Assembly (NCBI RefSeq): GCF_032062105.1
Contig: NW_026938238.1
Span: 62,001 to 126,000, forward strand
Source: Saccostrea cucullata
Lineage: Eukaryota
DNA: 64,000 bases
Direction of reading: 5' to 3'
How positions within the stretch are numbered: the first letter of the stretch is position 1; each line of letters begins with the position of its first letter. Below are positions 28,101 through 31,100 of the stretch, piece after piece. The notes beneath the pieces were generated by a model that had not been told where the DNA came from, did no database searches, and saw only the letters and a program-made list of their open reading frames with translations. The translations under genes and the position numbers were made by a program.

Positions 28101-31100
28101 AAATATAATCAAGAGAACTTTTCTGTCAAGAGTTGGCTGATATCAATACAATATTAAATTAATTGTGTAATTCCAACATTATTATTTTTTTCTTTTTTTA
28201 AATGGATACTACCATAAGCTTTAAACATTACAATTTTAAAACAATGTCAGTGTCAGATAAACATAATAAAAAAAATTGAATAACAAAAAGTCCATTGCAT
28301 TGTCGTGAAATCAGATGTAAGTATGCCTTTCCTTAAAGCTTGTGTCGCGAAAAGTGGCGAAAAATATTTTCGGTCCAGTGGGAGCCCTGTTTAGTAACCA
28401 CGGCAACACAGTTCATCGAAATCAAAAACAGATAAATAGAATTATGTATCTTATTGTAGTCAACTTGTGTGCCAAGTTATATTGAAATCAGACTAAAACT
28501 GTAGAAGGAGTAGCATTTTGAAAGAATTTCACAGAAATTTCTATTTTTAGTAACCACGGCAACAACGTTCATCGAAATCAAAAACTGATATACAGAATTG
28601 TGTATCTTAGTGTAGTCTACTTGTGTGCCAAGTTATATTGAAATCAGACTAAAACTGTAGGAGGAGTAGCATTTTGAAAGAATTTCACAGAAATTTCTAT
28701 TTTTAGTAACCACGGCAACACCGTTCATCAAAATCAAAAACCGATACACAGAATTATGTATCTTAGTGTAGTCTACTTGTGTGCCAAGTTATATTGAAAT
28801 CAGACCAAAACTGTAGGAGAAGTAGCATTTTGAAAAATTGTTTACAGACAGACAGACAGACGGACGGACGACGGACGCATTACTATCGCATAAGCTCTTC
28901 TGGTCTCTGACCAGTAGAGCTAAAAATTAACTATCTCAGATCAACTTTTACATGATAAATTATATTAATAATTCCTAAACAGAATTTGACTTATTTTTCT
29001 GTTTTCAGAATATCATTTGATTCAAATGTTTCAATTTTAGCTCTTCAAAATGTGTTTCAAATAAACAAAATATCAAAATACAAATACTTTACATATAAAT
29101 GTATTACACAAAACTATTAACAACAATGAATTCTGTGAAATCACTTAATTTCGTGTGGATTTCATTTTTATTGTCTTTGTTGTTTGAATAGACCCCAAAA
29201 TACATGTTATCCACAATATTTAAATTTTAAATAAATGATAACTTAATACTTAAAATGTATTCCTCAACTGACCCCACCAAAATATGTGATTTTACAGAAC
29301 ATGTATACATGTACAATATTTTCATAATATCCAAACATGAACACCTCAGCTAAAAAAAAAAACACAGCTGTACATTTGTGCATATTTACATGAATAAGTT
29401 TCCTCACTACATTCAAACTGAACTCAGTAGTGCACTAACCATTGTGCCAGAGAAACTAAAATTTCTTGATCAAGTGAGATTACTTATGCTCATATAATAC
29501 TCAGGTAATTAAGGGCTGTCAATGATGGGGTCCATATAAAATATTGTTATACCCTTATAAATATAGCTTTCTATATATTTATTACTAATAAAAAGTCCAA
29601 CAAAAGAAATGTTTATTACATCGGTCTAACAATTTTACTGTTGACTGGCCTGCCGGTCCAACATAAGAATTGTTAGACCGCAACGTCACAAGTGATTAAT
29701 CATCGTTAAATATCGGCAACACTGAAATAGCCGAAGTTAAGAGCTGCAAGAGTTGTTGCTAACAGCAAGGTAAGGAAGAAGGAAAGAGTATGTTTTGTGA
29801 TAAATAATTTTTGTGATACATTGTATGATAAAAATATAATTAATTTGGTTCTTTTTCAGCTATTGTTTTACCTTTACTGTAGTTCCATGTAAAGTAATTG
29901 ATAACATAGTGTGTATTGATTAAATCTTAAATGAGCACTGAAGGGTATAACAAAACAGTTATAGACTGGGATTTGGGCAACATATGATTTGTTGGACCTG
30001 AAGGTGAAAATGTTGCCCTTGGCCTGCGGCCTTGGGCAACATTTTCACCTTCAGGTCCAACAAATCATATGTTGCCCTCATACCCAGTCAATAACTGCAT
30101 ATTCTCCAACTTTAAATGCTTTGTTTTAATATCAATACAAAATTACATACATGAAGACTAATTCAAACAAAGTCACAATTTAACCACCAGGTCAGACAAT
30201 AAGCTTCATGTAGAATGACAGGGAATGACAATATACTAACAGTTATCTGACAATTACACTACCCAAGCCAGCATATTACAGTGTCATATCTGATTTAAAA
30301 TTACATTTATTTTGAAAGATCACTTTATATACATAAAAACTTGATTTCTTTCTTTCCCCCAGCAAGCACACAAAAGCTCCAATTTTCATTGATAAATGCC
30401 TAGTATTGTTAAGATGGTTCATCACCATTTGTTAGCACATTTCAACAAATTAGTACCACCCATCATGACTTAGCACAGGGCACCATAACTTACTTGCAAA
30501 TTTTACAGGTCTTTCCCATGAAGTAAATCTGCTTTGAACAGACTTCACAGGTACCACTCATTATGTAGCCTTTCTTAAATCTAGGATAAAACACAACACA
30601 AAGTGAAACTAAAGACACAACACATAATGTGAGGGGGTGTGACTTTATACAGGTAAAAGTAGTGGTCATAAAAAAGTTTTAAAAAATATACAACCACAAC
30701 ATTTTCTGACACTATCAATATGTAAAATGTTATCATTCAAACTATTTACAAGCCAAATTCAGCTTTTTTTGCTTTCAGTAAAATCTGATAAACATTTAGA
30801 ATGTTTTTTATTCAAAATACTTACTAGGTAAACTCATCTTTTTTTGCTTTCAGTAAAATCTGATAAACATTTTACACATCTGAGGTCTGACAACATGGAT
30901 TCTATTTTGACAACAGTTAGCTCCCTTACTTGCACACTTTACACTTGTATCCAAGAAACATTTGTTTGTGACAGAAGTCACAAGTCGTGATCTTAAAAGT
31001 GTTTGATATCCTACGACAAGGCAAAATTCACAAATAAGAAATGCATAAACAAGCATTATCATTAAAATGGTGTTCTTGTTAAAATATATGCATTTTACAC

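Follow-up and report, generated by a model that had tools for sequence, protein, structure and literature searches.

We analyzed a 64,000-nucleotide (nt) stretch of the genome of the oyster Saccostrea cucullata (contig NW_026938238.1, positions 62,001 to 126,000 of the forward strand; hereafter, the window), in which the gene for kinase suppressor of Ras (KSR) carries two adjacent exons, 9A and 9B, either of which can supply the N-terminal half of the C1 zinc finger. The best explanation of our results, to which we give a probability of about 0.7, is that 9A and 9B form an ancient mutually exclusive pair that arose by tandem exon duplication, with 9A as the minor isoform. For the switch between the two, an RNA-binding protein of the CELF family is a more tentative candidate. 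The analysis follows up an original prediction, made from the letters of the window, that the two exons are duplicated and probably mutually exclusive. All positions below are those of the window, the sequence of which contains no N.

KSR has two exons for the first half of its C1 domain

The identity of the gene is clear from its domains. When compared with Pfam, single exons match SAM_KSR1_N (E = 9.4e-10, 38.3 bits against a cut-off of 23.1) and SAM_KSR1 (23.0 bits against a cut-off of 22.5), and later exons match Pkinase and protein kinase families; therefore, the gene is KSR. The first two matches provide the helical hairpin plus SAM of the N-terminal CA1 region of KSR, and both the atypical C1 domain (CA3) and the C-terminal kinase-like domain are present as well. 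In tblastn searches of the window with the KSR proteins of S. cucullata and Saccostrea echinata, the exon cores are 100% identical to the former and slightly less so to the latter. In addition, the nearest database proteins carry names of the type kinase suppressor of Ras 1/2-like.

Reading the minus strand directly, we found that either exon fits between exon 8 and exon 10 (Table 1). Exon 8 ends in CAC AG before its donor GTTTGA, which gives a His, the first zinc ligand of the C1 domain, and an Arg whose codon is split after AG. The first base of 9A or of 9B is the third base of this Arg codon (AG+G or AG+A), and both exons finish in AA, a codon that the first A of exon 10 completes. The two exons therefore share the same phase, and both of their lengths are multiples of three. 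Each acceptor has its AG behind a pyrimidine tract, and each donor reads GTAAG. Either exon spans from just past the first zinc-binding His to the fourth Cys with CxxC...CxxC intact. When the His of exon 8 and the H..C...C of exon 10 are added, the C1 pattern H...C..C...C..C....H..C...C is complete with 9A as well as with 9B.

The peptides of 9A and 9B are about 40% identical, and no third half-C1 frame of this kind is present in the KSR gene. Being adjacent and homologous, in the same phase, similar in length, and each equipped with its own splice sites, the two exons have the properties expected of a tandem duplication. Altogether, the observation on which the original prediction was built, namely, two phase 2-2 exons with canonical splice sites, an intact CxxC...CxxC in both, and a fit of either between exons 8 and 10, is confirmed in every detail that we checked.

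Table 1. Features of the KSR gene and of its C1 exons in the window
Feature	Position	Strand	Length	Description
Whole KSR gene	19130..41654	(-)		Start codon region of exon 1 to the distal alternative last exon; from single-exon Pfam matches and tblastn
KSR exon 8	31281..31320	(-)	40 nt	Minus strand read directly; RNA read joint at 31281
Exon 9A	30930..31010	(-)	81 nt	First half of C1; acceptor ...gtcgtAG, donor GTAAGG
Intron 9A-9B	30581..30929	(-)	349 nt	Holds the conserved UGUUGUG cluster
Block ATGTTGTGGT	30693..30702	(-)		Invariant in all five oyster genomes
Block GTGTTGTGTCT	30613..30623	(-)		Invariant in the five oysters; contains an exact (G/U)UGUUGUG
Third copy of GTGTTGTG	30592..30599	(-)		12-19 nt upstream of the 9B acceptor
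Exon 9B	30494..30580	(-)	87 nt	First half of C1; acceptor ...atcctAG, donor GTAAGT
Exon 10	27003..27088	(-)		Constant second half of C1 (H..C...C); RNA read joint at 27088

At the other end of the gene, two homologous alternative last coding exons encode the end of the kinase domain (20785-20961 and 19130-19351, both on the minus strand), and both are used in the RefSeq isoforms of all oysters examined.

Relatives use either 9A or 9B

We found that, in relatives of S. cucullata, the use of the two exons is exclusive. Related proteins were gathered by comparing one kinase exon with a representative protein library, followed by further searches and cluster listings. The closest full-length KSR from the library search, a protein of Ostrea edulis, carries a peptide identical to that of 9A. 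Among the 39 full-length oyster KSR proteins retrieved, seven contain 9A only, 32 contain 9B only, and none contains both. The 9A-only set comprises O. edulis isoforms X2, X4, X6, and X8, Magallana gigas/angulata isoforms X2 and X5/X6, and an older M. gigas isoform X3. For O. edulis, isoforms X1 to X8 cover every combination of 9A or 9B with the two alternative last exons.

The KSR isoforms that RefSeq lists for M. gigas/angulata and O. edulis come from the same orthologous gene and use the same two exons, one per isoform (for example, XP_011432743 versus XP_011432742; XP_048770279 versus XP_048770272). Their 9A peptide is identical to that of the window, and their 9B peptide differs from it at one or two residues. 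The difference between the genera is that 9A isoforms are predicted for Magallana and Ostrea, whereas the Saccostrea isoforms retrieved carry 9B only.

Messenger RNA contigs of a further species contain the same exchange. One contig (L009) is of the A type, with a product of 842 residues, and four (L010 to L013) are of the B type, with a product of 845 residues. The SRA runs behind them, one for the A type and four for the B type, are numbered consecutively (SRR34486193 to SRR34486206). Across 3758 nt, L009 and L010 are colinear and differ only in the cassette and at 16 single bases. The KSR of this species shows the same identity of about 51-52% to the KSR of oysters, of the ark clam, and of unionids, and its source, judged by sequence, is probably another mollusc.

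These data bear on a rival explanation in which 9A and 9B are independent cassette exons, such that transcripts with both exons or with neither also occur and are translated. Since both lengths are multiples of three, both-in and both-out transcripts would stay in frame, and two existing gene models have these forms: a model of the ark clam Tegillarca granosa (P0162, locus L006) has the two C1 exons one after the other, and K1RWN0 (P0161), an M. gigas model from 2012, goes straight from exon 8 to exon 10. However, these models bear a submitter's or an early annotation name, and we saw no transcript support for either; the tandem form is probably an annotation error and the skipped form probably a gene-model error. 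In addition, the tandem form would double four zinc ligands and the skipped form would lose them, and not one of the 39 oyster proteins has both exons. Neither a 9A-9B joint nor an 8-10 joint is among the joints listed from four runs of S. cucullata RNA (111 further joints are unlisted). We therefore regard independent cassettes as quite improbable.

Other candidates for alternative C1 exons, or for the splicing of 9A, were discarded. A short-fragment protein search for spliced 9A pieces (P0002:335-400) returned no candidates. The single match of a mid-length protein search, P0194, was rejected as evidence of 9A splicing, as it derives from an unspliced Magallana contig that is read from exon 8 through the intron into 9A. 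A pair of mayfly KSR isoforms was set aside as well, as its members differ elsewhere in the protein and have the same C1 domain.

The 9A peptide is invariant among five oysters

We compared the window with the KSR loci of Magallana angulata, O. edulis, Crassostrea virginica, and S. echinata (L002 to L005), and with that of T. granosa. The order 8-9A-9B-10, with AG and GTAAG sites, is present in the window and in all four of the other oyster loci. The 9A peptide is identical in the five oyster genomes: its nucleotides vary in 12 columns, 11 of which are third codon positions, and the at least 14 substitutions that they contain cause no amino-acid change. The chance of such an all-synonymous pattern is approximately 3e-11 if 17.5% of random changes are synonymous, and approximately 5e-8 even if 30% are. 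Between the window and S. echinata, 9A has four synonymous and no non-synonymous differences, compared with a divergence of approximately 16% in the flanking introns; 9A is therefore still under protein-level selection within Saccostrea.

Over the same five genomes, 9B has accumulated at least 24 substitutions and has three variable codons, and the peptides of the constitutive exons 8 and 10 vary as well. The rarely used 9A is thus the best conserved of the four exons.

The pair extends to the ark clam. The A-type exon of T. granosa is identical to oyster 9A at 25 of 27 residues, and a B-type exon, approximately 43% identical to oyster 9B, lies approximately 2.3 kb past it; the two stand in the same order as in oysters and have proper splice sites, AG and GTAAG. 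In two unionid mussels (L007 and L008), a pattern scan and a relaxed tblastn search found a single B-like exon only. As both exons are present in oysters and in Tegillarca, the duplication is older than the split between them. Oysters and ark clams separated hundreds of millions of years ago. As such, the duplication is old and selected, as the original prediction held.

Both variants are predicted to fold as C1 domains with different tip loops

Taken singly, 9A and 9B match positions 7-35 of Pfam C1_1 weakly (E = 0.008 and 0.046, respectively). Their PF00130 scores of 16.4 and 14.0 bits are below the cut-off of 26.5 because each exon holds half a domain; full-length relatives with either exon carry PF00130, and the C1 ligand columns are invariant in a 43-sequence alignment. 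For both variants, the best sequence match among solved structures is the C1 domain of mouse KSR1 (PDB 1KBE; E = 3.1e-8 and 2e-7). AlphaFold2 models of the two C1 variants, built with the 43-sequence alignment, reached pLDDT values of 78.7 (A) and 76.5 (B), which is moderate confidence. In a Foldseek comparison, the top match of the A model is the RAF1 CRD (TMq 0.78, rmsd 1.5) and that of the B model is a C1 domain of PKC-alpha (TMq 0.79), a small difference in ranking to which we give no weight. Both variants are thus predicted to take the C1 fold, and their likeness to mouse KSR1 C1 and the RAF CRD consists of the best sequence match and this same predicted fold. We know of no alternative exon for the C1 domain in vertebrate KSR.

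The variants differ in the stretches between the zinc ligands, which measure 10 and 9 residues in 9A, 11 and 10 in 9B, and 11 and 9 in mouse KSR1. Relative to 9A, 9B thus has one extra residue in each of two loops. In C1 domains, these two stretches form the tip loops that face the membrane or a ligand. The CA3 region of KSR is reported to mediate membrane localization through phospholipids (PMC5583734). It is a reasonable supposition that the exon swap would change the membrane, lipid, or partner preference of KSR. By sequence, 9A is nearer than 9B to the KSR of arthropods and other animals; 9A would represent the ancestral type of the first half of C1, and 9B the derived one.

Conserved elements between the exons suggest a possible CELF-type switch

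Across the three introns around the pair, words of at least 8 nt that are common to all five oysters occur only in the 9A-9B intron (Table 1); the flanking introns contain no 8-mer common to all five. The heptamer TGTTGTG is present in the 9A-9B intron in two to four copies per oyster, where 0.03-0.13 would be expected, and each oyster has one or two exact (G/U)UGUUGUG 8-mers there. In the window, three of the four TGTTGTG copies of the whole 22.7-kb gene fall in this intron. In Tegillarca, there are six copies of TGTTGT where 1.2 would be expected, and four of the six lie in the last 200 nt before the B exon.

Experiments have defined (G/U)UGUUGUG as the element of the Caenorhabditis elegans CELF protein UNC-75. 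Its effect depends on position: an exon is activated by an element downstream of it and repressed by one upstream of it (PMC3627589). In the C. elegans gene unc-32, the intron that separates exons 7a and 7b contains the element, which selects the upstream exon in neurons (PMC3585155, PMC3627589). The oyster elements have the corresponding position, downstream of 9A (the activating side) and upstream of 9B (the repressing side), so that binding would flip splicing from 9B to 9A.

We propose that tandem exon duplication made 9A and 9B and that each mRNA would include only one of the two, spliced to exon 8 on one side and exon 10 on the other. The exon chosen would supply both tip loops and the constant exon 10 the rest of the zinc scaffold. 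Exon 9B would be the default in bulk tissue, and 9A would be a minor isoform that is probably restricted by tissue or stage. A CELF-family RNA-binding protein would bind the UGUUGUG elements in the 9A-9B intron and flip splicing toward 9A, perhaps in nerve or muscle. The KSR scaffold made in this way would differ in the shape of its C1 tip and, with it, in its membrane or partner preference. Such a switch in particular cells would explain how an isoform can be rare yet strongly conserved.

Within this proposal, the CELF link and the functional difference between the isoforms are parts that we infer. Taken by itself, the suggestion that a protein of the CELF family switches certain cells from 9B to 9A is tentative, with the odds leaning against it. 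More doubtful still is a fuller version, in which a CELF-controlled nerve or muscle switch would have been re-tuning the C1 tip of KSR since before the oyster/ark clam split, with 9A as the ancestral, RAF-CRD-like form and 9B as a derived, general-purpose one.

Other mechanisms that could enforce exclusivity were considered as well. Steric hindrance is rejected on the length of the intron, 349 nt here, 277-576 nt in the other oysters, and 2274 nt in Tegillarca. Incompatibility of U2 and U12 sites is rejected because all sites are GT-AG with GTAAG donors, and frameshift followed by decay is rejected because double inclusion or double skipping would stay in frame. For competing docking and selector RNA pairings, in which the intron blocks would pair at long range with the exons or the flanking introns, the results are mixed: no conserved complement of the blocks was found in the five oysters, and duplex energies compared with shuffled sequences are inconsistent, three species having z = -2.0 to -3.4 and the other two z = -0.1 and -0.7. 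Around the exons, we found no conserved RBFOX (UGCAUG), PTB-like, or YGCY motifs.

The 9A-9B intron holds a direct repeat of approximately 35 nt, in two copies approximately 73 nt apart (30763-30870). In the alignment, the second copy falls in a stretch that is missing from S. echinata, so a recent local duplication looks likely.

RNA from S. cucullata contains 9B

RNA of S. cucullata was examined over 26950-31400 in two raw oligo-dT runs (X21 and X22) and in contigs of two older runs (X1 and X2), which together come from three studies. The joint between exons 8 and 9B (30580/31281), which skips 9A, is present in all four runs. In raw reads, it is supported by five reads with one start in X21 and by four reads with three starts in X22; in contigs, it has a depth of 237 in X1 and 126 in X2. 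The joint between exons 9B and 10 (27088/30494) is present in X22 (three reads) and in the contigs of X1 and X2, and X21 has the 8-9B joint only. Both joints land exactly on the predicted borders of 9B, and 9B is the exon used in the RNA of this species that we examined. The mutual exclusion put forward by the original prediction holds in relatives, and in S. cucullata we see one of its two forms, 8-9B-10. In the same way, the comparison of 8-9A-10, 8-9B-10, and 8-9A-9B-10 junctions that it suggested returned 8-9B-10 and no listed joint with 9A.

Several observations weigh against the proposed switch. No spliced read or contig with 9A is among the joints listed for this species, beyond which the 111 unlisted joints remain, and the raw-read depth over 9A is zero in both raw runs, where the depth over 9B is only approximately 2. 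The RefSeq isoforms retrieved for S. cucullata, S. echinata, and C. virginica all use 9B, and the 9A isoforms of other oysters in RefSeq are automatic predictions, although the NCBI pipeline is not known to make alternative isoforms from anything but transcript alignments. Regarding the mode of control, Tegillarca has the TGTTGT hexamer cluster near exon B but lacks the heptamer, and the hypothetical CELF link consists of a motif match and a position, with the motif being that of a nematode protein.

Some of these observations would be expected if 9A, although in use in Ostrea and Magallana, survived in Saccostrea as a conserved relic that is no longer spliced, so that only 9B proteins are made. 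Only 8-9B-10 joints are listed, no raw reads cover 9A, and every Saccostrea RefSeq isoform retrieved uses 9B. However, the four differences in 9A within Saccostrea are all synonymous against the background of the diverged flanking introns, and the 9A splice sites are intact in both Saccostrea species. Furthermore, the read depth is too low to detect a 10% isoform, and a minor 9A isoform is compatible with these data. We consider the relic unlikely and infer from selection that 9A is used in this species.

Exon 9A itself was seen only in unspliced form: X1 and X2 each have one contig that runs through it and through 100-200 nt of the intron to either side. These contigs span 30733-31147. In X1, where the intron background is 1-4, the depth is 27.7, or about 10 times the background; in X2, where the background is 4-8, it is 5.2. 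At the ends of the X2 contig, 24 and 28 letters are unplaced. A genomic repeat was rejected as the source of these contigs, as the region is single-copy in the genome.

The depth of the X1 contig is one of two points in favor of a non-coding cause for the conservation of 9A, for example a role in RNA structure or as a splicing enhancer or silencer, rather than its translation; the other is that 9A adjoins the conserved intronic elements. Against this, variation that is confined to third positions in 11 of 12 columns and leaves the peptide unchanged is the signature of a translated frame, and the peptide is nearly the same in Tegillarca despite nucleotide divergence. In addition, a 9A-type peptide is encoded in a full-length transcript of another species (L009). 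A purely non-coding role for 9A is therefore the least probable of the explanations considered here, and very improbable in itself. The mutually exclusive pair, with 9A as the minor isoform, remains the explanation that we prefer.

Other features of the window

In the intron between 9B and 10, a 156-nt unit is present in 2.9 tandem copies, with related copies nearby (28390-28839 and approximately 27100-27400). RNA depth over this region is very high, from hundreds to more than 1000 raw reads per bin, and many of the reads fit two places or have loose ends. The unit looks like a dispersed, transcribed repeat family rather than a part of KSR.

Head-to-head with KSR lie the exons of a replication factor C-like AAA ATPase (approximately 43385-47700, plus strand). 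The same neighbor, with Rad17, AAA, and Rep_fac_C domains, stands upstream of KSR in the other oysters, a unionid, and Littorina, and the synteny of the two genes is old. By eye, the list of open reading frames further contains a cysteine-patterned frame resembling chitin-binding repeats (5750-6124, plus strand), reverse-transcriptase-like frames (53500-56900, minus strand), and a fragment of a Tc1/mariner-like transposase (63455-63838, minus strand).

Discussion

The 9A/9B pair is a well-supported new example of a familiar mechanism, mutually exclusive exons made by tandem duplication, and involves no new mechanism. In FGFR2, the exclusive exons IIIb and IIIc swap half of a binding domain and change ligand specificity under the control of elements in the intervening intron; there, the swapped part belongs to an Ig domain of a receptor, whereas in KSR it belongs to the zinc finger of a scaffold. 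A second parallel is the 7a/7b pair of C. elegans unc-32, which is mutually exclusive and has a UGUUGUG-type element between its exons (PMC3585155, PMC3627589). That pair belongs to another gene and another phylum, and binding and tissue specificity were tested there, whereas the likeness of KSR to it is one of motif and position.

The statement in the original prediction that such a pair had not been described for KSR stands in one respect and falls in another. A full-text search of the literature turned up no article that describes alternative C1 exons for KSR, but RefSeq already makes both isoforms public, as predictions, for two oyster genera. Among these, an older M. gigas accession still carries the label 'PREDICTED' in the manner of the earliest RefSeq annotations. 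For annotation, our results identify a conserved coding exon, 9A, that is absent from the Saccostrea RefSeq isoforms retrieved, and mark two other gene models as probably erroneous.

The C1 region is required for KSR to position the RAF-MEK-ERK cascade at membranes (PMC5583734). In the pair described here, a single exon choice replaces both loops of the finger without altering the protein elsewhere, an arrangement that is kept in oysters and in an ark clam. The two exons consequently offer a natural pair of C1 variants for asking what the finger of KSR recognizes, together with a candidate cis-element and a candidate regulator. They also provide a point of comparison for whether the switch exists outside bivalves. 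It may extend beyond them, because unionid and leech KSR carry B-like sequences. If the reading of the pair as a CELF switch is true, it would be the first case in which alternative splicing changes the targeting domain of a RAS-MAPK scaffold.

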